Positions 7,881 through 49,544 of a stretch of DNA of 64,000 nt are shown in pieces; within the stretch, counting starts at the first letter, position 1; each line of letters opens with the position of its first letter. The notes beneath the pieces were generated by a model that worked only from the letters and a program-made list of their open reading frames with translations, was not told where the DNA came from and ran no database searches. This stretch comes from Isurus oxyrinchus. Its lineage: Eukaryota. The stretch lies in NCBI GenBank assembly GCA_026770705.1, contig JANJGN010000323.1, positions 124,001-188,000 of the forward strand, written 5' to 3'. A program made the translations under genes and the position numbers.

Positions 7881-9033
7881 ATGGGAGAGGTCGGTCTGAT
7901 ACTGATCTTCATCAGCTTGCTGCAAGGTACAAATTCATTACTGATCGGAACTCAGGGAATTGGATTCTTTCCTGGAGTGAGGAAGTGAACATTTAATTTT
8001 AGAGAACAGGGTTAGTGATCACACAGAGAGTGAGTGATTAGCGAGTCAGAGAATGTAGCAAAAGAAAAAGCCTCATACGGACTCGAAACACCAACTCTGT
8101 TTCTCTCTCCACAGATGCTGTCAGACCTGCTGAGTTTTTCCAGCATTTTCTGTTTGTGCATCAGAGAGCTTGTTTCAATAGGAATGACAGTGCATTTATA
8201 TAGCACCTTTAATGCAGTAAAACATCCTTATTGCTTCACAGGATTCCCCCACAAGGGGTAACATCCCCTCAGCATCGACCCTGTCAAACCCCCCACCACC
8301 TCAGAATCTTATATGTTTCAATAAGATCACCTCTCATTCTTCTAAACTCCAATGGATACAGGGCCCAACCTGCTCAACATTTCCTCATAAGACAAACCCC
8401 CTTCATCCCAGGAATCAGCCCAGTGATCCTCCTCTGAACTGCCTCCAATGCAGAGTCTATCCCTCCCTAAGTAAGGAGACCAGAACTGTACACACTGCTC
8501 CTGATACAATCTCACCAACGCCCTGTACAGTTGTAGCAAGACTCCCCTCCTTTTATACTCCATCCCTTTGCAATAAAGGCCAACATTCCACTTGCCTTCC
8601 TCATTCCGTGGTGTTCCTGAATGCTGACTTTATGTGATTCATGTACAAGGACACCCAGATCCCTCTGTACCGCATTCTGCTGCCTCCCTCCATTGAAGTA
8701 ATATTCTGCTTTTTGATGTCCTGTCTCTTCCCTTGTTGCCTTTCAGGAGTGACGTCAGAGGGATGGTCTATGAAGGCGCTGCCTCGGAGGGCCATCAGCA
8801 GCTCTTGTGTGGTTATTCCGTGTAGCTTTGACTTTCCTTCCCACTCTTACACAGCACTGCACGGAGCTTGGTATAAATATTGGTATAGATGGAAATATAC
8901 CATCACATACACCAAAGATCCCAACTATGGGATGGCCACATTCGTGGGACGTGCTAAAATAATCGGCGACTTGGAAGGGAAGAATTGTTCGGTGAGGATT
9001 GACAGTCTCAGAGCTGAAGACAGTGACGTGTAT
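7881..9033 (+). pseudogene. Siglec-like gene D remnant: leader exon 7881-7926 plus V exon 8747-~9033 truncated by a retrotransposon
   Basis: MGEVGLILIFISLLQG|gtac, then tttcag|GVTSEGWSMKALPRRAISSSCVVIPCSFDFP...GDLEGKNCSVRIDSLRAEDSDVY, which runs into gag-like sequence with a stop at 9048. No downstream Ig exons were found. Confidence 0.8.
8262..8660 (-). mobile_element. CR1-type LINE 3' fragment
   Basis: LYRALVR..EQCVQFWSPYL, LSYEEMLSRLG. Confidence 0.8.
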
Positions 9034-19844: not shown

Positions 19845-20925
19845 TCACATCCAGTCGTGGACAATTAAACAACTCACTGGAGGAGGAGGCTCCACAAAAA
19901 TCCCCATCCTCAATGATGGAGGAGCCCAGCACACCAGTGCAAAAGACAAGACTGAAGCATGCGCAACAATCTTCAGCCAGAAGTGCTGAGTGGCTGATCC
20001 ATCTCGGCCTCCTCCGGAGGTCCCCAGCATCACAGATGCCAATCTTTAGCCAATTCGATTAATTCCACGTGATATCAAGAAAGGGCAGAAGGCACTGGAT
20101 ATTGCAAATGCTCCAGACCCTGACATTATTCCGGCAATAGTACTGAAGACTTGTGCTCCAGAACTTGCTGCGCCCCTAGCCAAGCTTTTCTGGAATTTTC
20201 TAGTACAGCTGCAACACTGGCAACTACCCGGCTATGGGGTACATCCTGTACACAAAAAGCAGGACAAATCCAACCCAGCCAATTCCCCAGCAGTCTATTC
20301 TTGATCATTACTACAGTGATTGAAGGGGTCATCAACAGCGCTTGCAAGCAGCACCTGCTTACCAAGAACCTGCTCACTGACGCTCAGTTTGTGTTCCACC
20401 AGGATCATTCAGCTCCTGCCCTCATTACAGCCTTGGTTCAAACATGCACAAATGAGCTGAACTCCAGAGGTGAGGTGAAAGTGACTGTCCTTGACATCAA
20501 GGCAGCATTTGACTGAATGTGGCAAAACAAGGAGCCCGAGCAAAACTGGAGTCAATGGGAATCGGGGGAAAACTCTCTGCTGCTTGGAGTCATACCCAGC
20601 ACAAAGGACGATGGTTGTGATTATTGGGGGTCAATCATCTCAGTTCCAGGACATCACTGCAGGAGTTACTCAGGGTAGTGTCCTAGGCTCAACCATCTTC
20701 AGCTGCTTCATCAATGTCCTTCCTTCCATCATAAGGTCAGAAGTGGGGATGTTTGCTGATGTTTGCACAATGTTCAGCATCATTCACGGCTCCTCAGATA
20801 CTGAAGCAAGTTATGTCCAAATGCAGCAAGACCTGGACAACATCCAGGCTTGGGCTGACAGGTGACAAGTAACATTCATGCCACACAAGTGCCAGGCAAT
20901 GACCAGCTCCAACAAGAGAGAATCT
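19845..20925 (+). mobile_element. CR1-clade LINE reverse transcriptase fragment
   Basis: VTVLDIKAAFD, GVTQGSVLGSTIFSCFIN, MFADV; frameshifts. Confidence 0.88.
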
Positions 20926-21414
20926 CATTGAAGGTGCAGAAAATTTGGATTTATTTTAAAGAGCCAGCCAGGACCAGCAGCTAGGGTGACAAAGCGTACA
21001 CAGACAATCACATCCTTACGTGAAAGCTAAAAACCTGTACAACGGGTTCAGCTGTAAATTTGCAATGAGGAAATGGGAGACACACACACAAGGACACAGG
21101 GTGACTCAATCAAGAAATGGGGAAGGTTATTTCACACCGTCCGATGGCCTTGAACCACATCCAGTCAGCCTCCGGAAACCTTTTGTAGCGAACAAACATA
21201 GATTCTGTGCTGTCTCAAAAGGACAATAGCCAGTCTCTGCCCTGTAATTACTGTACAAGAACACAATTATCAGCCCACCGGAGGGTCATTGTGCTGTGGC
21301 CTTTGTCTAACTAATACCATTACCTTGTAACTGAGAGTAAAAAATATATAAACTGTGCTCATTTGAACCTCGGTGGAGAAGCACCTGGACTGCCCAGGAA
21401 TGGCGGCTAAATGA

Positions 21415-22345
21415 GCTGCTGACACAAAGATAGGTTGGAAAGTTAATTGTGAAGCGGATGTAAGGTGGTTAGAAAGTGACATCGATAGGTTAAGTGAGTG
21501 GGCAAAGATCTGACAAATGGTGTATAATGTGGGCGCATGTGAAATTGTTCATTTTGTCAGAAAGAACAAGAAGGAAGATTATTATCTAAAAGGTGAGAGA
21601 TTGCAGAGCTCTGAGATGCAGAGGGATCTGGGTGTCCTCGTGCATGAATCACAAAAGGCTGGTTTGCAGATACAGCAGGTCATGAGGAAAGCTAATGGGA
21701 TGTTATAATTTACTGTGGGGGAATTGAATAGAAAAGTAGGGAGGCTACGTTCAGTTGTACAGGGCACTGGTGAGACCACATCTGGAGTACTCTGTACAGT
21801 AAGGTCACCTTACTTAAAGAAAGATGTAAATGCATTAGAAGCAGTTCAGAGAAGGTTTACTAGACTAATACCAGGATTGGGTGGTTTGTCTTATGAGGTC
21901 AGGTTGGACAGGTTAGGCTTGTATCCACTGGAGTTTAGAAGAGTAAGAGGCAACTTAATTACAACCTTTAAGATCCAGGGGAGTCTTGACAGGCTGGATA
22001 TGGAGAGGATGTTCCCTCTTGTGTGAGAATCTAGAACTAGGGGGTCATGGTTTAAAAATAAGGGGTCGCTCATTTAAGATAGAGATGAGGCGAAATGATT
22101 TCTCTCAGAGGGTAGTAAGTCTTTGGAACACTCTGCCTCAAAAGGCAGTGGAAACAGGGTCTTTGAATATTTTTCAGGCAGAGCTAGATAGATTCTTGAT
22201 TAACAAGGGGGTGAAAGGTCATTGGGGGTAGGCAGGAATGTGAGGTTGAGGTGACAATCAGATCAGCCATGATCTTACTGAATGGCGGAGCAGGTTCGAG
22301 GGGCTGAGTGACCTACTCCTGATCCTAACTCAGATATCCATATGT
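21415..22345 (+). mobile_element. CR1-type LINE 3' fragment
   Basis: RDLGVLVHESQK, LEAVQRRFTRLIPG, FSQRVVSLWN. Confidence 0.88.
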
Positions 22346-23809
22346 TCTCAAAGGCAATTGGGGATGGGTAACAAATACTGGCCTAGTCAGCGACACCAAC
22401 ATCCCTGAAATGAATAAGAAAAAAATGTATCAATCAATTAAATTTATTGATTAATCGAATCTAAATTCCTCCAGCTGCCGTGGTGGGATTTGAACCCTTA
22501 CCTCCAAAGCATTCACCTGGGCCTCTGAATCACTGGCCTAGTGCCATTCCCATTGTGCGACTGTCTGCTATCATCATGGCTCTTTCACATCGATGTGGAA
22601 GTCCTGATAAAAGAAGCATTGGACGAGGTACATAAGGTGACAAATCAGGAGCTCCATTGCTCAATAGGAATGGAAAATAAAGACAAATGAACATAAACCT
22701 TCCAGTCGCTAATTAGTGAGGTAGTGCAGCACTGTCGGAGGATCAGTACTGAGGGAGTGCTGCACTGTCAGAGGGTCTGAACTGAGGGAGTGCAGCACTG
22801 TCGGAGGCTCAGTACCGAGGGAGTGCTGCACTGTCGGAGGGTCAGTACTGAGGGAGTGCAGCACTGTCGGAGGTTCAGTACTTAAGGAGTGCTGCACTGT
22901 CGGAGGGTTCGAACTGAGGGAGTGCTGAACTGTCGGAGGGTTTGAACTGAGGGAGTGCTGCACTGTCGGAGGGTCTGAACTGAGGGAGTGCTGCACTGTC
23001 GGAGGGTTTGAACTGAGGTAGAGCTGCACTGTCGGAGGGTCAGTACTGAGGGAGTGCTGCACTGTTGGAGGGTTTGAACAGAGGGAGTGCTGCGCTGTCT
23101 AAAGAACATTGTACAAATTGTACAAAATTGCATCTGATGCCTGTGTCTCATGCACACATGAAGTTCATGCACACAACAGGAATATTTCTCGCTGTTTCTG
23201 AGCAGCAAGGCAGCCTTCATATCGCACCACCCACTGGCAGGAGAGTGTGCAGCTGCAATGTGACATGTTTACTTTGGAAATTTCTATTATAAAGATGGAC
23301 AGAGGAATTCATCTGATTGGAAAACATGACAATATGAAGTAATGTCTTTGAGCCAAGAATTTGGCAGCAAAATAAGAATTTTAATCTATAAGTATCTACA
23401 GAACAGGCTGAGCATTTTAATCACTTGTGTTAATCAATGTAATTTTATTCATAACCCAAATGCTTCTTACAATCTATCGCAGCATGAAAAAGGTGCAGCA
23501 TTCAGAAAGCACATTCCAATCAGAGAACAGAGTTTAGCAACATCACATTTCTGTTCATTCCTATTCGACCATGTTGGCTGCACACAGCCAGACAATGCCG
23601 TGGTTATGATGTGTCCACACAGCAGGACTGGGGAGCACCAGGTATAAGGAAAAGTTTCAGCTTGCTGAGGAGAAGAAGGAGAATCTCTCGTTCCAGGTTT
23701 CTCTCCGTACATTAAGAAGCAGGCATGCCGATGTTTCATTGCACTCTGTCTGCTGATGGGAGTCCGCTTGGAAATTGCTGTTTGTGCTGATGGAAAGAAT
23801 AAGCTTTTC

Positions 23810-24410
23810 ATAAATCGAGGGATTGAGTAAAAACACAGGGAGGTTATGCTGAACATTTATAAAGCTCTGGTTAGGTCACAACTAGAGTATTGTGTCCAGT
23901 TCTGGTCTCCTCACTTTGGGAAGGAAGTGAGGGTCCTTGAGAGGGTGGGGAGGAGATTGAGCAGAATGGGTCCAGGGATGAGGGCTTTTAGCTACAAGGT
24001 TGGGTTGGAGAAGCTGGGGTTGTTCTCCTTGGAGCAAAGGAGATTGAGGGGGGACCTGATCGAGGTGTACAAGATGATGATGGGTTTAGATCAGGTAGAC
24101 AAAGACAAGCTGTTGCCATTAGCTGATGGGACAAGGACTGGGGGACACAGATTGAAGGTTTTGGACAGAGGGGGGATGTGAGGAGGAACTTTTTTACACA
24201 GCGAGTGGTAATGAGCAGGAACTCGCTGCCTGCGAGGATGGTGGAAGTGGAGACGATGAACGATTTCAAACAGAAATTGGTTGGACACTTGAGGGGAAAT
24301 AAACTCACAGGGATACGGGGATAGAGTGGGGGAAATGGGACTGAGTGGATTGCTCTACAGAGAGACAGCATGGACTCAATGGGCTGAATGGGCTCCCACT
24401 GTGCTGAAAT
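23810..24410 (+). mobile_element. CR1-type LINE 3' fragment
   Basis: YKALVRSQLEYCVQFWSPH, LEQRRLRGDLIEVYK. Confidence 0.88.
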
Positions 24411-24527
24411 GCCTCTCTGATACGAAGGTGATTCTAACCAGGACACTGACCAGTTTCATTACAACTTAACCCAACATCACACGTTATTTGTCCGCACTGA
24501 CTGACCAGATTGTTGCTGTACAAAGCT

Positions 24528-24667
24528 TCAAACAGTCTGTCGACTTCCTTTTACTGTTTGTCTCTCCCAGACACAGACTCCAGCGATAGTGATAACCACA
24601 GCCACAAGGAATATCACAGCTCGTATTCCCAGGATCAGGATCACGTGCAGAATCTCTCCTCCACTGT
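24528..24667 (-). CDS. Terminal TM exon with intramembrane Arg and short tail (activating-receptor type); orphan or alternative exon
   Basis: tttctgtgtgttctctag| phase 1: SGGEILHVILILGIRAVIFLVAVVITIAGVCVWERQTVKGSRQTV*. Confidence 0.75.
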
Positions 24668-26349
24668 CTAGAGAACACACAGAAAGAAATCATCACTGGC
24701 TCTCCGCTTTCAATCTCTCACTCTGGCTGAACAATCAAGCTTCATATCACTGCAACATTTGCTGTAATATTGACCCATCCACTGGGATTCAATGTGGAAT
24801 GAATGTTTTCATTGTAAACACTCTAAGAGTGGACAATCGGAACTTTCCCCTTAGCGTGGAACATTGGTGAGAATGGATCATTGTGCTGTTGGACTCCCTG
24901 TCCAATGTTTCTCTCCATCGCTGTGTATAGGATTGTGCTGTAGAAAATTCTGGAAACGTTTAGTGCAGGGTGGAAATCCATCTCGGACGCGTGTGCGAAT
25001 CGGGCAGCATCGAGATGGACTCCCCCATGAACTTACACCCCCCGCTTAATAAACAGTTCCAATCTTTACCCAGAGAGAGGGGAGAATGTGGAACTCGCTC
25101 CCACAGGGAGTGGTTGAGGTGAACAGTATCGATGTATTTAAGGGGCAGGAGGGTCGGTAACCAGAGGGACACAGATTGACGAACCGGAGGGGGAGATGAG
25201 GAGAATTTGTTTTGACAGAGTGAGTTGCTGTGATCTGGAAGGCGCTGCCTGAAAGGGCAGTGGAAGCAGATTCAGTAGGAACTTTCAAAAGGGGAATTGG
25301 ATAAACACTTGAAGGAGGAAGATGGGGGCAAAGTGGAGTGGTGGTTAGTGGATCTGATTGGATAGAACATTGAAAGACCTGGCACAGGCACTATGGGCTG
25401 AATGGCCTCCTCCTGTGCTGTACCATTCTCCGCTTCCATGATCTCTCCCCCAGTCAGTAACGACTCCAGATCCCTCTTGAAGGTGACAGAGAATCAGCAA
25501 CCACCACACCCACTGACAGCACATTCCCGAGGATCACTACTCTCTGGGAAAAGATGAACTTGCCAACATCCAGCCTATTCCTGTTTCCCAGAGAGTGTAA
25601 ACCCTTCAGGGAGGCACTGAGGAAGTTTTCAATAAAATGACATCAAATCTACCGTTTGAGAAATAATTGAATTCTGATGAACTCACAGCTTGTGTAGCAA
25701 ACTGGGAAGTGGAGTTGCTTGAAAAGCTGGGAAACACAAGGATTAAGTGCTACAATGCCACCACTGGTAGGAGACTGTAACTACAGCGTGACGTTTACAT
25801 AGGCAGTCATCATTATAAACAGAGGCATTGGACATACTGGGAAATATGTGCACTGGAATGGTGAGTAAATGATGTAAGCTTTTCGCCAGCAGGAATTCTC
25901 TTCCTAAACCTCTCCACATCTCTCTTTTTCTCTGATACACAAACAAAGTCACACAGATTCAGATAAGGAGGATTTGGGACCGGTGATTGTTCGAAGGGTT
26001 AGCTTTCAGGAAGCTTCTTAAAGGGAGAGAGAGAGTTGGAGAGGCAGAGAGTATCTGTGAGAGCCTCTATGCATCTGAATGTCTGTAATAGACTTTAGAA
26101 TTTCCATATTCTGAGAGAGTGCTGCACTGTCGGAGGGTCAGTACTGAGGGAGTGCTGCACTGTCGGATGGTCATTACAGAGCATGTGTTGCACTATTGTA
26201 AGGTCAGTACTGAGGGAGATCTCCACTATTGGAGGGTGAGTACTGAGGCAGTGCTGCACTGTCAGAGGGACATTAATCAGGGAGTGCTGCACTGTTGGAG
26301 GATCAGTACTGAGGGAGTGCCGCACTGTTGAAGGGTCAGTATTAAGGTG

Positions 26350-26566
26350 CTGATTTACAAGACAGGACAATGGATTAGGAGCTCTCAGAACTGCCCCCAT
26401 GATTTCCAATCATTCCGTTACTTACCCAGGACCTGTCCGACTGCTCGCCTGGAGAGGAACTGCCCACACGCTCTGCTTGGGCTGAATGACCTCTTCCTGT
26501 GCTGCTCCCTATTTGTGTTTAATTAGAAAGGGTGGATGTGTCACTGTGAGTCAAAATGAGGAAGTG
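26350..26566 (-). pseudogene. Third copy of the 5' exon module joined to sequence from gene B's leader-V intron (deleted paralog remnant)
   Basis: 26426-26510 matches 43311-43395; TGAGTCA and GAGGAAGTG at 26547-26566; 26350-26400 matches 39860-39910. Confidence 0.6.
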
Positions 26567-26669
26567 CTTGGTACCAAGTGAGAAAGCAGCTCTTTGCCTC
26601 GCACTGTTAGAAAACTGTTAACCCTTTGCGTGCCAAGAATGTGGTTGAAGGGCCATTGACTGTTCACAT

Positions 26670-28960
26670 GCAACAAGCTCGAGGGGCTGAATGGGCCTCC
26701 TCCTGTTCCTGTGTAACAGGCTCGAGGGGCTGAATGAGCCCCCACCTGTTCCTGTGCAATGGGCTTGATGGGGCTGAATGGCCTCCTCCTATTCCTGTGT
26801 AACAGGCTCAAGGGCGCTAAATGGGTATCCTCCTGTCGCAGTGTGACATGATTGTGTGGCTGATTATGCCTCCTCCTGTTCCTGTGTAACAGTTTTTGGC
26901 AGGGCTGAATGTGCCTCCTCCTGTTCCTGTGTAACAGGCTCGAGGGGCTGAATGGACCTCCCCCTGTCCTTGTGTAACAGGCTCGAGTGTCCGGATTGGC
27001 CTCCTCCTGTTCCTGTGTAACAGGCTCGAGGGGCTGAATGGGCGTCCTCCTATCCCTGGGTAATAAGCTCGAGGGGCTGAATGGGCCTCCTCCTTTTCCT
27101 GTGCAACAGGCTCAGGGGGGCTGAATGGCCTCCTTCTCTCACTGTGTACCAGGCTCATGGGGCTGAGTGGGCCTCCTCCTGTTCCTGTGTAACAAGCTTG
27201 AGGGGGCTGAGTGGGCCTCCTCCTGTTCCTGTGTAACAGGCTCATGGGGCTGAGTGGGCCTCCTCCTGTTCCTGTGTTATAGGCTCGAGGGGCTGAGTGG
27301 GCCTCCTCCTGTTCCTGTGTAAAAGGCTAAAGGGGCTGAATTGGCCTTCCCCAGTTCCTGTGTACCAGGCTCGAGTACATTAGGAGCATCATTGGAAGCA
27401 GCATTTCACTTGCACTTCCCTCAATTTAATCTACTGCCTTCACTGCTCCCAATGTGGTCTCCTCTACATGGGACAGACCAAACACAGACTGGGTGATCGC
27501 TCTGATGAACACCTTTGGTCTGTCCGCAAGCATGACCCAGACCTCCCTGTCGCTTGCCATTTTAACACCCCACCCTGCTCTCATGCCCACATGTCCGTCC
27601 TTGGCCTGCTGCATTGTTCCAGTGAAGCCCAACACAAACTGGAGGAACAGCACCTCATCTTCCGACCTGGCACTTTACAGCCTTCCCGACTGAATATTGA
27701 GTTCAACAATTTCAGATCATGAACTCTCTCCTCCATCCCCACCCCCTTTCCAATCTCCCTTTTCCATTAATTTATCATTTTTAATATTTATTTTATTTAT
27801 ATATTTTTCTTTTCCCACCTATTTCCATTATTTTTAAATGTTTTACATCTGTTGTTGTATCTCTACCTTTTAGCCTATTTCAATCCTTTCCCCCCACCCC
27901 ACCCCCACTAGGACTATCTGTCTCTTGCTCGTCCTGCTTTCTACCCTTAATGTCCCCATTAGCACATTCCTCAGATAATATCACCACCGTCAACACCCCT
28001 TTGTCCTTTTGTCTATCACATCTTTGGCAACCTCTTCTTTACCTCCACCTATCACTGGCCCACAATCCAGCTCTACCTGTCCCACCCCCTCTACCAGCTA
28101 AAACGTCACCTCATTTCTCGATTCCCTTAGTTCTGATGAAGAGTCATACAGACCCAAAACGTCAAGTGTGTTCCTCTCCGCAGATCCTGTCAGACCTGCT
28201 GAGTTTTTCCAGCTATTTTTGTGTTTGTTCCCGTTCATGTGGAGCAGGCTTGAGTGGCTGAATGGAGCCCCTAATGTTCCTGTGTAACAAGCTTGTGGAG
28301 GCTGAATGGGCCTCCTCTTCCTGTGTAACAGGCTCGAGGGGACAGAATGGGCCTCCTCCTGTTCCTGTGTAACAGGCTCGAGGGGGCTGAATGGGCCTCC
28401 TCCTGTTCCTGTGTAACAGGCTCGAGGGGCTGAGAGTCTCTCCTGTTCCTGTGGAAGGGTGTTGAGGGACTGAATGTCCTCTTCCTGTTCCTGTGTAATA
28501 GGCTCATGAGGCTGATGGGCCTTCTCCTGTCCTCATGTAACAGGATTGAGTGGCTGAATGGGCCTCCTCCTGTTCCTGTGCAACAGGCTCGAGGGGCTGA
28601 ATGGGCCTCCTCCTGTTCCTGTGTAACAGGCTCATGGGGCTGAATGGGCCTCCTCCTGTTCCTGTGTAACAAGCTCGAGGGCCTGAATGGGCCTCCTCCT
28701 GTTCCTGTGTAACAGGCTCGAGGGGCTGAATGGGCCTCCTCCTGTTCCTGTGTAACAAGCTCGAGGGCCTGAATGGGCCTCCTCCTGTTCCTGTGTAACA
28801 GGCTCAAGGGGCTGAATGGGCCTCCTCCTGTTCCTGTGTAACAGGCTTGAGGGGCCGAATGGGCCTCCTCCTGTTCCTGTGTAACAGGCTTGAGGGGGCT
28901 GAATGGGGCCTCCTCCTGTTCCTGTGTAACAGGCTTGAGCTGCTGAATGTCCTCCTCTCA
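26670..28960. repeat. ~43-bp minisatellite arrays (26670-27375 and 28245-28960) split by a Penelope insertion; inverse copy at 10390-10770
   Basis: Unit CCTGTGTAACAGGCTCGAGGGGCTGAATGGGCCTCCTCCTGTT. Confidence 0.92.
27395..28230 (+). mobile_element. Penelope-like element fragment (GIY-YIG endonuclease end)
   Basis: CSQCGLLYMGQTKHRLGDRSDEHL, LNIEFNNF. Confidence 0.8.
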
Positions 28961-30288
28961 TTAAAAATAAATACTGCAGACGCTGTAAATCTAAATAAAA
29001 TCAGAAAATGCTGCATTAACTCAGCAGGTCTGGCAGCAGCTGTGGAGAGAGAAACAGAGTTTTTGCTTTGAGACTCTGAAGAAGGGTCATACGGACTCGA
29101 AATGTTAATTCTGTTTATCTCTGCACAGATGCTGCCAGACCTACTCAGTCTCCAGCATTTCTGTTTTTGTTTCAGGTGCCCTCTTGTTCCTGTGTAGCAG
29201 GTTCGAGGGGGCTGAATGACCTCCTCCTGTTCCGATTCAATGGGCAGTCAAAGCATGTGTCTGATTTTGGACATGGAACCCAATTCTGTCCTCAGGACAC
29301 TGATAGAGGGAGAGACCAGATACAGATCAATGCAGGAGGATTATTTATTTTCCCAATCTTTGATCCAAGCATCTCATCAAACACAGAGCGGAAACAGGAT
29401 CAAGGATGTTGGTCTCTGTAATCTGTAACACATCGCACAGTCCACCCATCCACTCAGCCTTCAGGATGGATGCTAATTGTACTCTCCAAGTGTGAAAGAC
29501 TAAAATGGTGGTTTATTGCAGCTCTGTCTCATTCTGTTATCAAAGCTGTCTCATCCATCCATGACATATTGAAGAAGGTAAACCTGCAACCAAATTTTCA
29601 CATCATAATTTCCTATGTTCATTGGCTATATCAATGTAAACATGTCACGTTGTACTGATGAACTCCCACCAGTGGTGGCACTGTAGCACATCTGTTATCC
29701 TCTGAGCTGCAGAGAATTTCTCAAATCTCCAATCAAATTGCTTCCCTGTTTCCCAGGTTGTTGTTCGTTTCGCTGTTTAACGATGAAGTGTAAAATCCAA
29801 ATATATTTCTGAAAATACTTTTGACTACAAAATGGTGAGTAAATTTTAACAATCTCCTCTGCTCCAATTATCCACCGATGCTGCATTTCCTGAAGTCTAC
29901 ACTGGCTGATGAATATTCTAAACACTGACAGACAGGAAGGTGAATAACAGAATGAAAATTAACTCATAATCATGGACACGGGATTGAATTTGTCCGTTCT
30001 GTCCTGGTACATCATCGAACGATATCTAAAGACATTTACAATCAGAATGGAGAGAAGGATGTTTCCAACAGTGAGGGACAAATCTGAAGGAGGATGTTCG
30101 AATGGAAACCCACAGACAATCATCCAGGATAGATCATTCCGAAGAAATTCCATCAGATTGTAACAAGAGGTTTAAATCTATTTCCTGGGAGTGAGTTCCT
30201 GTTGATATTAGGAAGGTAAATTGGAGTTTTGAATGATTCTCCCGTTCTGTATTCTCCCCACACTGTGTGTGTCTCATTCTTGCTCAGT

Positions 30289-30405
30289 TTATAAATTCCC
30301 ATAAACAGAATCCTTGGCAAAATCACAGTTTGCGTAAAGATCATCATCTGTATCAGGACTGACTCCGCGGTTAGATTTCATTTCCAGATCCTTCTCATCT
30401 TTCTT
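30289..30405 (-). CDS. Terminal cytoplasmic exon with LYANC and SVYGNL motifs
   Basis: ctgtttctattacag| KKDEKDLEMKSNRGVSPDTDDDLYANCDFAKDSVYGNL*; acidic residues precede the Tyr motifs. Confidence 0.75.
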   Translation of the reverse strand, partial: KKDEKDLEMKSNRGVSPDTDDDLYANCDFAKDSVYGNL

Positions 30406-33400
30406 CTGTAATAGAAACAGAAATGATCAGAGTGACAATCAGAGTGATCAGTGTTTAGTATTATTGATCCAAATCAAAAATTCCATCCACAATAGAGACA
30501 TTAATTATTGATACTGAACGGGGTTTGATTATTGATTCTGAACGGGGTTTGATTATTGATACTGAACTGGGTTTGATTATTGATCCTGAAAGGGGTTTGA
30601 TTATTGATTCTGAACAGGGTTTGATTATTGATTCTGAATGGGGTTTGATTATTGATCCTGAAAGGGGTTTGATTATTGATTCTGAACAGGGTTTGATTAT
30701 TGATTCTGAATGGGGTTTGATTATTGATACTGAACGGGGTATGATTATGGATTCTGAATGGGGTTTGATTATTGATTCTGAACGGGGTTTGATTATTGAT
30801 ACTGAACGGGGTGTGATTATTGATACTGAACGGGGTTTGATTATTGATACTGAACGGGGTTTGATTATTGATTCTGAAAGGGGTTTGATTATTGATTCTG
30901 AAAGGGGTTTGATTATGGATTCTGAACTGGGTTTGATTATTGATCCTGAACAGGGTTTGATTATTGATTCTGAAAGGGGTTTGATTATTGATACTGAACG
31001 GGGTTTGATTATTGATTCTGAACGGCGTTTGATTATTGATACTGAACGGGGTTTGATTATTGATTCTGAAAGGGGTTTGATTATTGATACTGAACGGGGT
31101 TTGATTATTGATTCTGAACGGCGTTTGATTATTGATACTGAACGGGGTTTGATTATTGATTCTAAAAGGTGTTTGATTATTGATTCTAAACGTTGTTTGA
31201 TTATTGAACCTGAATGAAGTTTGATTATTGATTCTGAACTGGGGTTGATTATTGATACTGAACGGGGTTTGATTTTAGATTCTAAACGGTGTTTGATTAT
31301 TGAATCTGAATGGAGTTTGATTATTGATACTGAACGGTGTTTGATTATTGATTCTGAACAGTGTTTGACTACTGATTCTCAAAGGGGGTTGATTATTGTT
31401 ACTGAACGGGGTTTGATTATTGATTCCGAACGGGGTTTGATTATTAATTCTGAACAGGGTTTGATTATTGATACTGAATGGTGTTTGATTATTGATTCTG
31501 AACGGGGTTTGATTATTGATACTGAACGGGGTTTGATTATTGATTCTAAACGGTGTTTGATTATTGAACCTGAACGGGGTTTGATTATTGATCCTGAATG
31601 GGGTTTGATTATTGATTCTGAACAGGGTTTGGTTATTGATTCTGAATGGGGTTTGATTATTGATCCTGAAAGGGATTTGATTATGGATTCTGAAAGGGGT
31701 TTGATTATTGATTCTGAACGGGGTTTGATTATTGATCCTGAACAGGGTTTGATTATTGATTCTGAACGGGGTTTGATTATTGATACTGAACGGGGTGTGA
31801 TTATTGATACTGAACGGGGTTTGATTATTGATACTGAACGGGGTTTGATTATTGATACTGAACGGGGTTTGATTATTGATTCTGAAAGGGGTTTGATTAT
31901 TGATTCTGAAAGGGGTTTGATTATGGGTTCTGAACGGGGTTTGATTATTGATCCTGAACAGGGTTTGAATATTGATCCTGAAAGGGGTTTGATTATGGAT
32001 TCTGAAAGCGGTTTGATTATGGATTCTGAATGGGGTTTGATTATTGATTCTGAAAGGGGTTTGATTATTGATTCTGAAAGGGGTTTGATTATTGATACTG
32101 AACGGGGTTTGATTATTGATTCTGAACGGCGTTTGATTATTGATACTGAACGGGGTTTGATTATTGATTCTGAACGGCGTTTGATTATTGATACTGAACG
32201 GGGTTTGATTATTGACATTGAACGGGGTTTGATTATTGATTCGAAATGGTGTTTGATTATTGATTCTAAACGTTGTTTGATTATTGAACCTGAATGGAGT
32301 TTGATTATTGATTCTGAACTGGGGTTGATTATTGATACTGAACGGGGTTTGATTATAGATTCTAAACGGTGTTTGATTATTGAATCTGAATGGAGTTTGA
32401 TTATTGATACTGAACGGTGTTTGATTATTGATTCTGAACAGTGTTTGATTACTGATTCTGAAAGGGGGTTGATTATTGATACTGAACGGGGTTTGATTAT
32501 TGATTCCGAACGGGGTTTGATTATTAATTCTGAACGGGGTTTGATTATTGATACTGAATGGTGTTTGATTATTGATTCTGAACGGGGTTTGATTATTGAT
32601 ACTGAACGGGGTTTGATTATTGATTCTAAATGGTGTTTGATTATTGAACCTGAACGGAGTTTGATTATTGATACTGAACGGGGTTTGATTATTAATTCTG
32701 AACGGGGTTTGATTATTGATACTGAATGGTGTTTGATTATTGATTCTGAATGGGGTTTGATTATTGATACTGAACGGGGTTTGATTATTAATTCTGAACG
32801 TGGTTTGATTATTGATTCTGAACGGGGTTTGATTATTGATTCTAAACGATGTTTGATTGTTGAACCTGAACGGAGTTTGATTATTGATTCTGAACAGTGT
32901 TTGATTATTGATTCTGAAAGGGGGTTGATTTTTGATACTGAACGGGGTTTGATTATTAATTCTGAACGGGGTTTGATTATTGATACTGAATGATGTTTGA
33001 TTATTGATTCTGAACGGGGTTTGATTATTGATACTGAACGGGGTTTGATTATTGATACTGAATGGGGTTTGATTATTGATTCTAAACGATGTTTGATTAT
33101 TGAACCTGAATGGGGTTTGATTATTGATTTTGAACGGGGTTTGATTATTGATACTGAACGGGGTTTGATTATTGATACTGAACGGGGTTTGATTATTGAT
33201 TCTGAACGGGGTTTGATTATTGATTCTGAATGGGGTTTGATTATTGATACTGAACGGGGTTTGATTATTGATACTGAACAGGGTTTGATTATTGATTCTG
33301 AACGGGGTTTGATTATTGATACTGAACGGGTTGTGGTTATTGATTCTGAACGGGGTTTGATTATTGATACTGAACGGGGTTTGATTATTGATACTGAACG

Positions 33401-36400
33401 GGGTTTGATTATTGATTCTGAACAGGGTTTGATTATTGATACTGAACGGGGTTTGATTATTGATACTGAACGAGGTTTGATTATTGATTCTGAACGGGGT
33501 TTGATTATTGATACTGAACGGGTTTTGATTATTGATTCTGAACGGTGTTGGGTGTGAGTTTGGTTGGGTTTGGGAGTGACTGTATAAAACATTGCGGATA
33601 CAGGACTGGAGCAGCCATATCAATAACCAGGCTACTGGAGCAGCTGAGAGGCTGGGGATCCTGTGGTGTGTGACACAACTGATTCCTCAAAGCCCAACCA
33701 CGTTCACAGTTTTCATAAAGAGGACCTCGATATTCATCAACACGGTAGTATGATTTGATTCCTGCTTTCCCCTCGCCTCTCTTCTGGAATAGAGATGGAA
33801 ATGGACAGAGTGACAATCACAATGATGTGTATTCGGTGTTGGGTTTGATTATTGGGGAGAGAGTTCCAGATTTCCACTCCCCTTTGTGTGAAGAAGTGCT
33901 TCCTGACATCACCCCTGAATGGCCTGGCTCCAATCTGAAGTTCCAGCCCCCTTGTTCTGGACTCCACCCGACCCCCACCACCCACCCCCACCCGAGGGAA
34001 TAGCTTCTCTCTATCGACCCTATCGAGTGTTTAATCAGTTTGAACCCCTCAATTAGATCACTCCTTAATCTTCTAGACCCGAGGGAATATAATCGTAGAC
34101 TGTGTGTAACCTGTCTGCATAATTTAACCAGAAAGATGTTCTGTCCAACAAACCTAAGCCTCACACCCAGATCTCAATAATCAGTAGAAATCTTTCAAAG
34201 GTATCAATCATTGGAATCTGTCTTTATAAAGTCACAACATCAACAAAGGATGGTGTTGGTGGTGGAAGTGAATTCCAATCGTTCTGTTACTTACCCAGTA
34301 CCTGTCCGACTGCTCGCCTGGGGAGGAACTGCCCACACGCTCTGCTTGGGCTGAATGACCTCTTCCTGTGCTGCTCCCTCTGTGTATTTAATGAGAAAGG
34401 GTTGATGTGTCTCTGTGAGTCAAATCAGGAATTGGGGAACAATTGTGAAAACCGTTTCACTGAAACGTAGGGCCTTAGTGTTGTGTTGTAAGCAAACTGT
34501 TAACCCTTTGTGTCCTGACTCTGTGACGTGATTCCTGTGTAAAGCTGAGCTGTTGGTGAGCGAGTTTCAATTCACTGCTCACTCCAGATGTTGAGGTGGA
34601 TCTTCTGAAGGAGCAGATGTTGCTCAGCGCTCCTTAAAAATGTGAGATACTGAACAATGTGTAAGAGGACGAGAGAGAGAATGAGAAGGAGAGCATTAGT
34701 GGAGATAAGAGAGAGTGAATGAGAGAGAGAATGAGAAGGAGAGCATTAGTGGAGATAAGAGAGAGAGTGAATGAGAGAGAGAATGAGAAGGAGAGCATTA
34801 GTGGAGATAAGAGAGAGTGAATGAAACATGGAAAAAGGAAAGAGATTGCATTCACTAACAAAAGAAAAGTTTTCATTTATATAGCACCTTTCACATCCTC
34901 AGGAGGTCACAAGGTATCTTATGGTGCGGGTCAACACTGCCAGTTACAGGACTGAGTTGTGAAACATTGAGTGTTGGATGAGATGTTAAACAGTATGTGA
35001 AAATCAAAACTCTTCAGGGGCTGTGAAGGGTTTTGGGTTGTGAAAGGTGCTATAGAAATGCAAGTTCTTTCTATAAGGAGAGAAGTTTGAAGAAAAAATG
35101 TTTGAAATCAACCAATTAAACCTTCACACTTACTTTCTCACACACTTGAAGATGAAGAATCCACTCAGTCCAACACTCAAACAGATTCCAGCTCCAAGCA
35201 ATCCTGCTTTCCATTCATTGGAATCTCGCCCTGTAAAATCAGCCAATGAATGACTCCGGTACAGTTTGAGAATGGTTCCCTATGTACATGTAGTAATTCT
35301 GAACTTGTGAAGTGATATTGTCTATGCATGAAAGGTCTATACAAATAACATTTATCTATGTAATATTTATTGATAATATCCATGTACATGCAGGTTTCTA
35401 TAAGGAGGATTCACATATAACAGAGGTGCCAAGCTGCTGAGGTGACACACAGGAATACATACACGCCAAACAGCGGAAACAACATGCTATAGACAGAGCA
35501 AAGCGATCCCACAACCAACGGGTCAGATCTAAGCTCTGCAGTCCTGCCACATCCAGTCATGAATGGTGATGGACAATTAAAGATCTAACAGGAGGAGGAT
35601 GTTCCACAAATATCCCCATCCTTAACGATGGGGGAGCTCAGCACATCAGTGCAAACGACAAGGCTGAAGCATTGGCAACCATGTTCAGCCAGAAGTGCTG
35701 AGTGGATGCTCCATCTCGGCCTCCTCCAGAGGGTCCCAGCATCACAGATGTCAGCTTTCAGACAATTCAATTGACTCCACGTGACATCAGGAATCAGCTG
35801 ATGATACTGGATACAGCAAAGGCTAATGGCCCTGGCAACAACCCGGCAACAGGAAATAATGTGGCTACAAGAGCGGGTAAGAGGCTGGGAACTCTGCGGT
35901 GAGTAATTCAACTCCTGACCCCCCAAAGCCTGTCCACCATCGGACAAGGCACAAGTCAGGAGTGTGATGGAATAATCTCCAATTGCCTGAATAAGTGCAG
36001 CTCCAACAACACTCAAGAAGCTCGACACCATCCAGGAGCAGCTTGTTTGATCGACAGCCCATCCACCAGCATAAACATTCATACCCTCCACCACTGGCAC
36101 ACAATGGCCGCAGTGTGCACCATCTACAAAATGTGCTGCAGCAACTCACCAAGGCTCCTTCGACAGCACCTTCCAAACCCTTAACCTCTTCCACCAAGAC
36201 AGTTCCAAGTCAGTGTGGTGTGTGACTTGGAGGCGAACTTGTGGTGTTGGTCTTCCATGAGATTTGGAAATATATCGGCCGTACCTTCACCGTCGCTGGG
36301 ACAAAATCATGGAACTCCCTCCCTAACAGCACAGTGGGTGTACCTACACCACATGGACTGCAGTAGTTAAAGAAGGCAGCTCACCACCACCTTCTCAAGG

Positions 36401-39400
36401 GGCAGTTACAGATGGCCTTGTCAACAATGCCCATATCCCATGAGCTAATAAAAACAGAATGTTCAATTCTGTGTAACTCACGTTCCACAGTGATGGTTAT
36501 GAATCCCTCCACTGCTCCATGTTCATTCTCTGCCACACACTGATAGTCTCCAGTGTCCCTGGATGTAACGTGAGGAATCACCAACCACAGCTCATTGTTG
36601 GAACTTGTTCTGTTCATTGGGACATTAAGATGTCGCCACGTCAGGTTAGAAGCTGGGAAGCTCTCGACAGAGCAGATTATCACTGCAGAATTCCCCTCAA
36701 TTATATTGATCGATGAAGCGTTAATCACATCAAGAGAAGTAATTGAGAGATTCTGTGGTCCATCTAAAAACAAATAAACATCAATTAAGTTACACTGACT
36801 GTGAAGCACTTTGAAAGACACTGAGAATGTGAAAGGTGTGATATCAATATAGGTTCTTTCACCACAAAGCCCATAATCCAGCCAGACACCTCAGTTCAGT
36901 ACTGAGGGTGTGCTGCACTGTGGGAGGGTCAGTACTGAGGGAGTGCTGCACTGTCAGAGGGTCAGTACTGAGGGAGTGCTGTACTGTCGGTGGGTAAGTA
37001 CTGAGGGAGTGCTGCACTGTCAGAGAGTCAGTACTGAGGGAGTGCTGCACTGTCAGAGGTTCAGTACATAGGGACTGCTGCACTGTCTGATGGTCAGTAC
37101 AGAGGGGTTGCTGCACTGTCGGAGGGTCAGAAATGAGGATGTGCTGCACTCTCAGAAGGTCAGTACTGAGTGGGTGCTGCACTGTCGAAGAGTCATTACT
37201 GAGGGGGTGCTGCACTGTGGGAGGGTCAGTACTGAGGGAGCACTGCACTGTTGAAGGGTCAGTACTGAGGGAGTGCTGCACTGTCGAAGGGTCAGTACTG
37301 AGGGAGTGCTGCACTGTTAGAGGGTCAGTACAGAGGGAGTGCTGCACTGTCAGAGGGTCAGTACTGAGGGAGCACTGCACTGTTGAAGGGTCAGTACTGA
37401 GGGAGTGCTGCACTGTCAAAGGGTCAGTACTGAGGGAGTGCTGCAGTGTTGGAGAGTCAGTATTCAAGGACTGCTGCAGTGTCAGAGGCGGATTTGTATC
37501 AGTTAAAGACTATTGATTTGTTGCTAAACACAATGCAGTTGTGGGATCTTGCAGTGTACTATGTAGAGCATTCTAGCTAATGTAGATGGAAGGGTGTCTG
37601 TTCTTACCTTGCACAGTTAGTACGAGGGTCTTCTCCGATGAAACAGATGGATATCTCACTCTGCAGCTTAGAGTGTGTCCGTGGTGTTTGAGTGATGGGA
37701 TCAGGGTCAGAACAGAAGTATAGGTCAGAGTGACACCATGATGAGTTACAGTGTTTGAGACTGATCCAGGTACGTCAGTGGGAATGTCCCAGGATAAGAC
37801 AGGTGCTGCTGTTCCACTGCACGTTGTGTTGAAGGTGCAGCTTACATCCACACGCTCTCCTGCATTAATTTCAGCAGTGAATATCGTGGGTTTATCTGTG
37901 AAATCTAACAGACAGAGAATGGATCCTTTTAGAGAAATATAACGTGAAGCATCAGTTCAAATAGAAACCACAGTCCCACAAGAGAAAGCACTTTTACAAG
38001 GATGATATCAGAACTGAGATGTTTTAACGATCCTGATAGACTGTTAGACACGATTCGAGAGATCGATGGGAGTGGAATACATTTAATCATTGATATTAAA
38101 GTGAGTTTTAAATGTTGCTTTAGGACTGAACTGGAAGCTATCACCAGGTTATTGAGAATCAGACATTGTGTTATAATAAGCTGTGTTTTGTGTTAATATG
38201 TAAACGTCACAGTTTCACTTCATTGGCTGTGAATCAGTTTAGGATCGTCCTGAGGTGGTGAAAGGCGCTATGGAAATGTGAGACTTGCTTTTGTATTTTG
38301 AAAGCAGGTTTCCAAGGATGAGATGGGAACTGAGAGGTAACAACAATCAGCAGCAACTTTCTTATTTTCAAACTTGGTGGGGAATGTGTCACTGAGCTCA
38401 ATACACTTTCACTCCCAGACCCTTGAATTGCCAACACTGGGGTGTGGGTGATGGAGCAGTCCACAGCTCATGGAACCCTGGCTCATCATTCTCTCAGAGA
38501 TCTGGGTCACTGATCCCATTGCTCTCTGTGGGAGCTTCCTGTGAACAAACTCACTGCCACGTTAGACAGTGACTATACTTCAAGAATTTCTTCATTGTCT
38601 GTGAAGTGATTTGGTACATGGTGAAAGGTGCTATAGAAATGCAAGTCTTTACTTTGTCAATTTGCCAGACTTTTAAATAGGGATTAGAGAGTTCTATGTG
38701 AGTGGATAACCTGATAACATTGATGGACACAGTCAACACATTTAATCATTGATATTAAAGTGAGTATTAGAGGTTGCTTTAGGACTGAACTGGAAGCTAT
38801 CACCAGGTTGTTGAGAATCAGACAGTATGTTATAATAAGCTGTGTTTTGTGTTAATATGTAAACGTCACAGTTTGTGTTATTTCCCACTGAGTGTTGAAT
38901 GTGAATTGTTGAGTAATTATAACACAGCACTTACCAGAAATGTGAAGCCGGGTTACAGGGTAATAGTTATAGCGCGGACCATTGTCAAATTCTATTCTGA
39001 AAAAATAAGGTCCTGCATCTTCCCGTCTGATGTTGTTTATAATCAGGGAACAGTCACCATCTTTCAGGTCTCCAGACAGCCGGGTCCGATGGCGGAACCG
39101 TGGTAACTCGTGACGGTGATCCTTGGAGTGAAAGGCTATGGACAATCTTCTCCGTTCCTCATTATTAAACCAGACTCCACCTCGTGGTTGGCTTTCCAAA
39201 TGTGCTGGATAACTGTAATGACATGGAATCTGTACACACGAACCTTCCTGCGCTGTCACCTCTCGTGGAGTATCACCTTTCCACTCTTGTGACAGTCCAA
39301 CTGGGGAGAGAAAAATCAATATTTAACTCTGGATGTTTTTTCGATCCATAATTCTTGATATCCACTCCCTCCATCACTGGGGCACAGTGGCTGCAGTTTG

Positions 39401-42400: not shown

Positions 42401-42881
42401 GTCTTCATGGGAAATTTTGAATAAAGGCAGCAAAGGATACAAATTTCAGGCCATTGCTATCGGAGACCTAACATTAGGATAGACTTCATCCCCCAGTTTT
42501 TATCCCTGCTTCTCTACTCAACCCATCACTCCCCATCGCTCACTGACCAACGTCCGACAGCACCTGAATTTCAAGATTCTGCTCTCGCTGCTACAAACCT
42601 GCCTATCCCTGTAAACTCCTCCAGCCCCTACAACCCTTCAAGACCACTGGTCTCCATCAATTCTGCTGTCAGACAGGGAGTCAGTGTATATCAGTGAGCA
42701 CAGGGCTGATGTTTGAATGGGACTTGGTGTGAGTTTGTACACTGGATCACTGCTGAATCAGTTCCCTATCAGAGCTCAATAAGAATGATCTTTAACAAAG
42801 ACTATTAACCATAAATCTGTCCGAGCTGACGATGGTATTACCTTGGAGAAGCGACAGGAGGAAGTAAGATTTCCCGATCAT
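30289..42881 (-). CDS. Siglec-like gene B: leader-V-C2-C2-TM-cytoplasmic tail (tail exons less certain)
   Basis: Exons 42842-42881, 38935-39300, 37608-37904, 36482-36763, 35134-35230, then putatively 34295-34379 and 30289-30405. All are phase compatible. Confidence 0.72.
30502..33545. repeat. 24-bp tandem satellite, about 127 units
   Basis: Unit TTGATTATTGAT(A/T)CTGAACGGGGT, with constant phase throughout. Confidence 0.97.
33700..33783 (-). CDS. Candidate extra cytoplasmic exon with LYENC (3' boundary unresolved)
   Basis: Good acceptor ccatctctattccag| then KRGEGKAGIKSYYRVDEYRGPLYENCE; resembles the 30289-30405 exon; no clear phase-0 donor. Confidence 0.4.
34295..34379 (-). CDS. Putative gene B cytoplasmic bridging exon (copy of an 85-nt exon module also at 43311 and 26426)
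   Basis: acacag|...TGG|gtaagt; phase 2-0 and open (GSSTGRGHSAQAERVGSSSPGEQSDRYW); the only phase-compatible link I found to the phase-0 Tyr exons. Confidence 0.45.
35134..35230 (-). CDS. Gene B transmembrane exon (Gly-rich)
   Basis: RDSNEWKAGLLGAGICLSVGLSGFFIFKCVR; paralog of 51287-51383, same length and phases. Confidence 0.87.
35400..36445 (+). mobile_element. CR1-clade LINE fragments between the last C2 exon and the TM exon of gene B
   Basis: Same family as 19845-20925 and 50690-51150. Confidence 0.75.
36482..36763 (-). CDS. Gene B C2/I-set exon 2
   Basis: DGPQNLSIT...IICSVESFPASNLTW...DTGDYQCVAENEHGAVEGFITITVE; phase 1-1. Confidence 0.9.
36893..37485. repeat. 33-bp minisatellite (also 3038-3325, 5750-5910, 16277-16612, 22717-23095, 26113-26342, 49205-49455)
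   Basis: Unit ACAGTGCAGCACTCCCTCAGTACTGACCCTC(T/C)G. Confidence 0.95.
37608..37904 (-). CDS. Gene B C2-set exon 1
   Basis: Close paralog of 55427-55723 (SCTFNTTCSGTAAPVLSW...LSCRVRY). Confidence 0.9.
38935..39300 (-). CDS. Gene B V-set exon (essential Arg present)
   Basis: VGLSQEWKGDTPREVTAQEGSCVQIPCHYSY...GPYFFRIEFDNGPRYNYYPVTRLHIS. Confidence 0.92.
41484..41650. repeat. 28-bp tandem repeat
   Basis: Unit TAAGGAATCTCT(T/A)TGGAT(C/T)CTCATTGTC. Confidence 0.9.
42842..42881 (-). CDS. Gene B leader (signal peptide) exon, coding part; exon begins at 42923
   Basis: MIGKSYFLLSLLQ+G|gtaata; upstream acceptor ctttctctttcag. Confidence 0.82.
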
Positions 42882-43310
42882 TGTCCACTCCCAGATATTT
42901 CCTCAGCTTCTAACTCTGAAGTTCTGAAAGAGAAAGGAGTTAATGAGACTTCACCTCTTGTCCGAATGCTCTTGAGAGATCAGAACTGCTTTTAGACAAT
43001 ATCCTCACAGACAAATTTGATTCTCTGTGGGATGATAGGTGCTCTGCAGAGAGTTACAAGGCTTTAAGAAAGAAAAACAATGAAGGACTTGCATTTCTAT
43101 AGCACCTTTCACCACCTCAGGACGTCCCCACGCTCATGTCCCTTGAGCTAGAAAGATGTTCTGTACAACTTGAGCCTCACACCCAGAACTCAATAATCAG
43201 TAGAAATCTTTCAAAGGCATCAATCATTGGAATCTGTCTTTATAAAGTCACAACATCAACAAAGGACGGTGTTGGTGGTGGAAGTGAATTCCAATCGTTC
43301 CGTTACTTAC

Positions 43311-43452
43311 CCAGGACCTGTCCGACTGCTCGCCTGGGGAGGAACTGCCCACACGCTCTGCTTGGGCTGAATGACCTCATCCTGTGCTGATCCATCTGTG
43401 TATTAAATTAGAAAAGGCTGATGTGTCACTGTGAGCCAAAATGAGGAAGTTG
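43311..43452 (-). promoter_or_regulatory. 5' non-coding exon module upstream of the gene B leader, with a PU.1-like site
   Basis: Donor G|gtaagt at 43311, about 390 nt above the leader-exon acceptor; AATGAGGAAGT at about 43440. Confidence 0.5.
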
Positions 43453-43739
43453 GAACAAAGTGAGTGAACAGCACTTTGCTGTGCACTGTCAGCAAACCCT
43501 GTGTCTGTATAAGAATATAAGAACAGAACAAGTAGGATCAGCTGGACACCCTGACATTTTCCCTCCTTATATTCCATCCACTCATTTTTTTATCCACTCA
43601 CTGAAACTATTTATCTCCCTCTGCAGCCTCTTTGTGTCCTCCTCACAACTTGCTTTCCTGCTCAGCTTATATATTTCCTACCTATCTTCACCATACAGTC
43701 AGAAAATCTGCCTACAGTACAGTCAGTCCCTTCATCCAA

Positions 43740-48820: not shown

Positions 48821-49063
48821 TCACTTGAATCTGATCTGTGCGTATTCCGTCTCCTCTTCCCTGTGGACAGACCCATCACCACTGGGCACCCTGAAGACTT
48901 GGGGATTGGCGTAGAGAAAGTCCGCGGGATTCTCAGGATTCCCATGTCCAGCATCACCTCCCACTGGACCTTCAGAGAGTCCCCGGGGAGCTGGGGTCTC
49001 CCCCTCACTAGTTGTGTCTCTGGTTGTGTTCCGGGGCTCAGTAATCAGCACGTTCTGTTTACC
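48821..49063 (-). CDS. Gene A last exon with FLYANP and TEYAQI motifs
   Basis: ccatttctctgtag| GKQNVLITEPR...ADFLYANPQVF...EEETEYAQIRFK*. Confidence 0.85.
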   Translation of the reverse strand, partial: GKQNVLITEPRNTTRDTTSEGETPAPRGLSEGPVGGDAGHGNPENPADFLYANPQVFRVPSGDGSVHREEETEYAQIRFK

Positions 49064-49544
49064 CTACAGAGAAATGGAAACAGAAGGCATCCTCACATCA
49101 TTTACTGGCACTGATAGGGTTAAATTATTGTGCAGCGTCGTTAGTGTCAGTCGTGGCTCAGTGGGTTTAATCCTCCCTCATGTCATCTGAAAGAAACCAC
49201 CTATGGCAGTGCAGTGCTCCCTCAGTACTGACCCTCTGATAGTGCAGTACTTCCTCAGTACTGACCCTCCGACAGTGCAGCACTCCCTCAGTACTGACCC
49301 TCCGACAGTGCGGCACTCCCTCAGTACTGACCCTCTGTCAGTGCAGCACTCCCTCAGTACTGACCCTCCGACAATGCAGCACTCCCTCAGTACTGACCCT
49401 CCGACAGTGCGGCACTCCCTCAGTGCTGACCCACTGTCAGTCCCGCACTCCCTCGGTAATGGCTCTGGTGAGTGACGGCTTGGTTTCTGCACTCAGGTGC
49501 CTGGTCTGAGGCTCAATAACATGAATCTTGTAATCAGAGAGGAT

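Follow-up and report, generated by a model that had tools for sequence, protein, structure and literature searches.

An activating-type transmembrane exon behind an inhibitory-type Siglec-like gene in Isurus oxyrinchus, possibly the remnant of a gutted paralog

Two Siglec-like genes and a lone terminal exon

The window, that is, the whole stretch of DNA analyzed here, comprises 64,000 nucleotides of contig JANJGN010000323.1 of Isurus oxyrinchus. Its minus strand carries two Siglec-like genes, which we call A and B, and, 5.6 kb downstream of the gene B stop codon, a terminal exon (24667-24528) encoding a transmembrane (TM) segment with an arginine inside it, termed here the Arg-TM exon.

Gene B, whose exons we mapped with basking shark model P0023 as tblastn query, spans 42881-30289 from leader to stop on the minus strand. 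An 85-nt module at 43395-43311 (minus) serves as its 5' exon, as read in basking shark model P0024, where the module is spliced to the leader exon. The leader exon itself (MIGKSYFLLSLLQ, phase 1) lies at 42881-42842 (minus) and is the sole leader exon in the window. The V-set exon (39300-38935, minus; Pfam V-set E 5.8e-12, Ig_CD22 E 1.4e-9) contains the sialic-acid arginine motif FFRIEF, so that the V-set domain with a binding arginine on strand F that is expected of a Siglec is present and sialic-acid binding is predicted from sequence. The C2a exon (37904-37608, minus; C2-set_2 E 1e-8) and the C2b exon (36763-36482, minus; Ig_3 E 5e-13) both have phase-1 donors, ending in G and C, respectively. 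They are followed by an uncharged TM exon at 35230-35134 (minus; phase 1 in, phase 2 out) that has 13/20 pyrimidines in its acceptor tract and ends AGA AA before gtaagt; its counterparts in models of the basking and great white sharks are 94-97% identical to it, and the TM exon of gene A (51383-51287) shows 63% amino acid identity. Three cytoplasmic exons complete the gene: cyt1, another copy of the 85-nt module, here read GSSTGRGHS... (34379-34295, minus), cyt2 (..LYENC..; 33783-33679, minus) and the terminal coding exon cyt3 (..DLYANC..SVYGNL, stop; 30405-30289, minus). Pfam has no family for this last exon. AATAAA signals stand at 29517 and 29349. With a complete exon set, three Ig exons confirmed by Pfam and its own tyrosine-motif terminal exon, gene B is a full inhibitory-type gene.

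Several details of gene B deserve mention on their own account. Immediately after cyt2 the sequence reads tt (33678-33677) where homologs need a gt donor (..RNQ/KKDE..); skipping cyt2 keeps the frame and the last two tyrosine motifs, as in the great white shark model P0038. The intron between cyt2 and the terminal exon holds a 24-bp tandem array of about 3 kb (30504-33549, 127 copies, 88% matches), with several open frames on both strands. A second open frame (KYLGVDNDREILLPPV..) overlaps the leader exon at 42842-42900 (minus), and several RefSeq shark models take their N-terminus (MKYLG...) from this second frame; these are probably mis-started models, or else the frame is an upstream ORF. 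The 85-nt module occurs three times on the minus strand of the window (34295-34379, 43311-43395 and 26426-26510), the copies being 87-92% identical including their flanks. It has a double role in gene B, as cytoplasmic exon 1 and as the 5' exon before the leader, and the basking shark RefSeq model P0024 contains two copies of it, read in two frames, within one conjoined transcript.

The terminal coding exon of gene A, with the motifs LYANP and TEYAQI, lies at 48821-49063 (minus) and serves for the comparison of 3' flanks described below. The C2a domain of gene A is identical to that of a great white shark model over 99/99 residues, and its V2 domain has lysine where the sialic-acid arginine would stand. 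A C2b-type exon of gene A survives as its last 73 nt only (55157-55229, minus; 98.6% identical to gene B 36476-36548); the rest was replaced by an insertion, and the exon is therefore probably skipped. On the opposite strand, a further Siglec-type V-set exon (8755-9033, plus) shares 32-35% amino acid identity with the V exons of genes A and B.

The Arg-TM exon and its relatives in other sharks

Read on the minus strand, the acceptor of the Arg-TM exon is ...ttctttctgtgtgttctctag followed by AC at 24667, these two bases finishing a split codon (phase 1). It is a strong acceptor, with 17/20 pyrimidines ahead of the tag. The 45 codons (24665-24531) and a TGA (24530-24528) encode a short linker (SGGE), a hydrophobic span of 29 residues whose 11th is the only arginine, and a cytoplasmic tail of 12 residues, ERQTVKGSRQTV, in which tyrosine is absent. 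The 21-residue hydrophobicity peak of this exon (2.95) is the highest value in all six frames of the window. Both hallmarks of an activating-type tail are thus found here, namely one basic residue buried in a single-pass TM segment, and a short tail that lacks ITIM, ITSM and ITAM. The earlier note on this DNA had described a phase-1 terminal exon with an intramembrane arginine and a tyrosine-free tail of 12 residues, and our rereading of the strand agrees with it throughout. That 24667-24528 is a genuine activating-type terminal exon, in an intact copy, we regard as certain. Its probable 3' UTR (23380-24527, minus), drawn from poly(A) signals and RNA-type contigs, includes a LINE fragment (approximately 23846-24300), an AATAAA at 23449-23444 and an ATTAAA at 23385-23380; the contigs cover 23245-24667 piecewise and do not fix the true 3' end. 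Within this UTR, 24303-24527 is unique to the locus. As to the other two frames, phase 2 is open over the exon for 70 codons without a stop (24696-24484, minus), while phase 0 meets a stop after eight codons.

We searched the 45-residue peptide with phmmer against 1.84 billion representative proteins. There were ten matches (E 7e-14 to 4e-4), nine of which were shark receptor models; the match lay at the very C-terminus in eight of these nine, the exception being the mis-fused model P0010. The models from this first search came from RefSeq and GenBank and belong to Scyliorhinus torazame, Chiloscyllium punctatum, Hemiscyllium ocellatum, Rhincodon typus and Mustelus asterias. Further searches added the "Siglec-14 isoform X1/X2" of S. 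canicula, with the layout V-C2a-tail, and more than ten Siglec-like models of Carcharodon carcharias on at least six scaffolds. Altogether, at least eight shark species have RefSeq gene models that end in the Arg-TM tail, and the phmmer matches to C-termini of models from Scyliorhinus, Carcharodon, Chiloscyllium, Hemiscyllium, Rhincodon and Mustelus run from E 7e-14 to 1e-7. The Carcharodon tails match the window exon at 44/46 residues. In Carcharodon the joint reads ..TVQ-D-SGGEILHV, as expected when a phase-1 C2a donor with a final G meets the AC of the exon, and in S. torazame P0002 and Chiloscyllium P0003 it is a C2b-type exon that is joined to the tail. The motifs I-LGIRA-x-IF and G-x-CV are invariant over three shark orders, the buried arginine is invariant in 15 shark homologs, and the homologous tails have 4-12 residues and no tyrosine.

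The ectodomains in front of these tails connect them to the window. Relative to inhibitory gene A, the Carcharodon Arg-TM models are 93-95% identical in V2 and 97-99% identical in C2a. Partners of opposite signaling type with near-identical ectodomains, as define paired receptors, are thus found at the level of the family, the orphan copy itself being without an ectodomain. The earlier note had proposed that the exon supplies an activating-type TM segment to a paired Siglec-like system, and this bears it out. It had wished to see the exon attached to Ig exons in relatives; models of Carcharodon, S. torazame, S. canicula and Chiloscyllium all have that arrangement.

Other resources were less telling. 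Pfam has no family for the Arg-TM tail, nor was any sequence relation detectable between the mammalian Siglec tail exon and the shark tail exon (Pfam, no match). ESM Atlas returned unnamed clusters with scores of only 0.76-0.80 for the exon peptide and was uninformative. Word-index searches with the tail found just five proteins and overlooked the Carcharodon models, so that their misses carry no weight. The exons of the window were searched one by one.

One could object that the feature is a chance open frame with a hydrophobic run rather than an exon, as its small size of 45 codons might allow. Yet the peptide matches real protein C-termini at E 7e-14, 44/46 residues are shared with Carcharodon models, and the acceptor at 24667 is used in RNA-type contigs (below). 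The first two of these refute the objection for 24667-24528, and we give it practically no credence.

The Arg-TM tail also ends CD22-like and SLAM-like models (P0004, P0005, P0007 and P0009), from bamboo, epaulette, cloudy cat and starry smooth-hound sharks, and is therefore a shared module rather than a Siglec-specific one. A related arginine-containing span occurs in the stingray Siglec-like model P0094. These sequence matches suggest that an Arg-TM exon has been shared across receptor families, and that several of them may use a common adaptor in sharks.

Contigs from four sequencing runs (X1, X5, X6 and X7), taken from four studies and two related species, were compared with the window. 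That these runs are RNA is a guess, which fits their patchy coverage and the zero depth over unique intron in two of them. Depth over the exon (24510-24609) against the stretch upstream of it (24710-25009) was 547 against 48 in X1, 92 against 0 in X5, 242 against 0 in X6 and 232 against 7 in X7, so that it drops just upstream of 24667 in all four runs. Record 15 of X5 (674 nt) fits 24257-24667 and continues, exactly from the acceptor, with 264 letters that do not fit, and contigs of X6 and X7 end at 24669. The acceptor is thus used, with paralogs as a possible source of these molecules. In the spliced X5 contig one nucleotide is missing at 24638, which would disrupt the Arg-TM frame; the two other contigs of that species do not have this deletion. 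Related-species contigs are colinear with the window through 24615-25258, and their intron contigs are 96.6-97.5% identical to it. The high-depth contigs either lie mostly over the conserved coding region or reach an identity of only about 94%, and the RNA therefore supports the exon family rather than specifically the window copy. Ortholog-like pieces in X6 and X7 (96-97.5% identical) have similarly low depth on the UTR (8.6-14) and on the intron (7).

A relic gene start and the origin of the exon

At a distance of 1.7 kb upstream of the Arg-TM exon we found a degenerate gene start. It is the third copy of the 85-nt module (26510-26426, minus), in which the donor gtaagt has been kept and the acceptor cag has become aat. 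The homologous block extends over 26615-26400 and is 87% identical to the surroundings of the gene B 5' exon (43285-43497) and 89% identical to those of gene B cyt1 (34269-34450). Homology to the gene B 5' block stops 26 bases into the intron of the relic module, and a 57-nt piece of intron 1 (26403-26347, minus) abuts there base to base. This piece is 94.7% identical over 57 bp to gene B intron 1 at 39912-39856, its only other copy in the window, approximately 560 bp upstream of the V exon. The abutting of module and intron piece thus corresponds to a deletion of approximately 3.4 kb relative to gene B, one that removed the leader exon.

From the relic gene start to the Arg-TM exon there is satellite and transposon debris. 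A 33-bp satellite (26111-26341) directly follows the intron-1 piece, 43-bp tandem repeats occur at 26672-27375 and 28229-28957, and very deep pile-ups from multiple contigs at 25010-25509 and 24010-24109 fit debris of this kind. Neither tblastn nor phmmer, using Ig exons and full-length relatives, found any Ig or leader remnant in 20000-30300. The earlier observation that the exon has no Ig exon of its own nearby thus holds, the upstream sequence being free of one for 5.6 kb.

Downstream, a 3' flank block (23224-23641, minus) is 74% identical over 427 bp to 47773-48193, a like-oriented stretch behind the last exon of gene A, with an aligned ATTAAA in both copies, in keeping with the earlier claim of homology between the two flanks. 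What is shared is this distal block of 420 bp; when the bodies of the two terminal exons (24182-24760 and 48627-49140) were aligned by Smith-Waterman, the result did not rise above shuffled sequences. A flank homologous to that of gene A is what would be expected of a separate unit in a tandem gene array. There is a third, partial copy of 72 bp at 25750-25819, and the block may therefore be a dispersed repeat rather than a landmark of gene units.

We propose that the Arg-TM exon is the orphaned 3' end of a gutted activating paralog, favoring this over an alternative end of gene B because of the wrecked gene start upstream, which has neither leader nor Ig exon; we would put the chance of its being right at about even. 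The locus would originally have had three tandem units, genes A and B and then a third, activating gene that has been reduced to its two ends. What is left of the 5' exon of the third gene would be the decayed module at 26510-26426 with the intron-1 fragment attached to it, whereas the leader and all Ig exons of that gene would have been lost, with satellite and transposon debris in their place, and its terminal exon and 3' flank would have been kept. The Arg-TM exon would thus stand orphaned behind gene B, and could contribute to a receptor only through read-through of gene B with splicing from 37608 or 36482 to 24667. By analogy with Siglec-14, Siglec-16 and other paired receptors, the buried arginine would recruit an ITAM adaptor with an acidic TM residue, for which DAP12, FcR gamma and CD3 zeta are candidates.

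The principal competing view is that the exon is a regular alternative end of gene B, in which C2a (37608) or C2b (36482) is spliced to 24667 past the poly(A) site of the tyrosine-motif exon. The TM and cytoplasmic exons would be skipped, and a single ectodomain would come in inhibitory and activating forms. We hold this to be possible, though on the unlikely side, and we are marginally more doubtful of its fuller form, in which gene B is one gene for both receptor types by virtue of an Arg-TM exon captured from a gutted neighbor 12-13 kb downstream. The geometry permits it. The exon is on the same strand and is the next one downstream, with no gene between. It is compatible in phase with both gene B Ig donors: C2b has its phase-1 donor at 36482, in frame as the earlier note had stated, where C is followed by gtgagt and C plus AC gives histidine, and C2a ends with G at 37608, where G plus AC gives aspartate, exactly the Carcharodon joint, while a joint from C2b to the tail is seen in P0002 and P0003. 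Gene B itself has a complete tail and poly(A) signals of its own, which speaks for an orphan, and splicing to the Arg-TM exon would need an intron of 12-13 kb that crosses the gene B terminal exon and two AATAAA signals. Read-through splicing from one tandem gene into the next is nonetheless seen for this Siglec-like family in P0024: this basking shark conjoined-gene model reads cyt1 of one gene into the 5' exon and leader of the next, which makes capture by gene B plausible and counts against the orphan interpretation. So does the state of the exon, intact and with a pyrimidine tract of 17/20 where the gene B TM exon has 13/20. However, shark sequence evolves slowly, as the intron contigs show, and intactness therefore says little either way. 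The loss of the GT donor of cyt2 hints at a gene B tail in flux, and a contig spliced exactly at the strong acceptor 24667 would mean, if orthologous, that the exon is not silent; but the high-depth pieces, mostly conserved coding sequence or only 94% identical, may be supplied by paralogs, and pieces specific to this locus lack a contrast between exon and intron (UTR 8.6-14 against intron 7 in X7; intron 48 in X1). Further against an alternative end, the relic gene start shows that the exon once had a gene of its own, and among the 116 proteins retrieved in all, no lamniform model combines a V-C2a-C2b ectodomain of gene B type with the Arg-TM tail. Of the two options that the earlier note had put forward, a relic and a splice partner of gene B, both survive, the former strengthened by the degenerate gene start and the latter compatible in phase.

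Two other readings leave the sequence features in place and explain them differently. If the exon served gene B in phase 2, entered from the TM exon whose AGA AA end is of that phase, the product would be an uncharged-TM receptor with a 61-residue tail free of ITIMs, and the arginine frame would be irrelevant here. The 70 open codons of phase 2 and the 1-nt deletion at 24638 in the acceptor-using related-species contig would suit this, but the database matches were all to the phase-1 peptide, with no homolog found for that of phase 2, and the deletion is missing from the two other contigs of that species; we consider such use highly improbable. Somewhat less remote, though still improbable, is an assembly artifact, in which the animal itself would possess a complete activating paralog and the assembly would have collapsed or omitted the leader and Ig exons of that paralog among near-identical tandem copies and satellites. 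Tandem repeats abound in the interval and paralogous exons are 87-99% identical, and such regions are hard to assemble. The assembly nevertheless has no run of N between 6812 and 48465, the junction between module and intron 1 is a clean deletion joint at base level, and the colinearity of related-species contigs through 24615-25258 also speaks against collapse. An orphaned 3' end thus remains the reading that we prefer.

Comparison with known paired receptors

Paired activating and inhibitory Siglecs have been described in mammals. Our literature search on Siglecs with activating tails in sharks or cartilaginous fishes returned nothing relevant. In many sharks a paired Siglec-like system is already predicted by automatic (RefSeq) annotation, and what is new here is, more modestly, the state of decay or capture.

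The closest counterparts of the window exon are in Carcharodon models such as XP_041037232.1, XP_041037236.1, XP_041037190.1 and XP_041037143.1, whose terminal 46 residues are 91-96% identical to it. Models of this type have V and C2a domains 85-99% identical to those of genes A and B and an aspartate at the joint, through the phase-1 C2a donor. They are automatic predictions of uncharacterized proteins and possess a leader, one or two V exons and C2a, whereas the window copy has none of these. Outside the Siglec-like group, the I-LGIRA-x-IF ... G-x-CV module stands at the C-terminus of the CD22-like XP_072423590.1 and XP_060679410.1, behind multi-C2 ectodomains, and of XP_078073575.1 and GCB63027.1, behind SLAM/CD2-like ectodomains.

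Human Siglec-14/Siglec-5 and Siglec-16/Siglec-11 are tandem pairs whose ectodomains are near-identical through gene conversion (PMC4042635). In each pair ITIM/ITSM-like motifs mark one partner, and the other combines a basic TM residue with a short DAP12-binding tail (PMC4042635). The shark pairing arose independently, in a shark lineage, and adaptor binding is predicted for it by analogy. As regards the second candidate adaptor, a 2014 survey reported that the shark data of its day contained no homolog of FcR gamma (PMC4016189).

On the reading that we prefer, the locus shows decay and recombination in a tandem array, in which an activating gene is without its sensing exons and its spliceable tail is intact behind an inhibitory gene. 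Should gene B capture the Arg-TM exon, one ectodomain would signal both ways. A human parallel is the SIGLEC14/5 fusion (SIGLEC14-null) allele, where a deletion between similar tandem paired genes leaves a hybrid arrangement (PMC4042635). There the SIGLEC14 promoter is joined to the SIGLEC5 coding exons and the activating tail is lost; at the shark locus, by contrast, the tail of the activating gene survives and the ectodomain is lost. If captured, the exon would offer a natural experiment on the rise and loss of paired receptors comparable to that human fusion.
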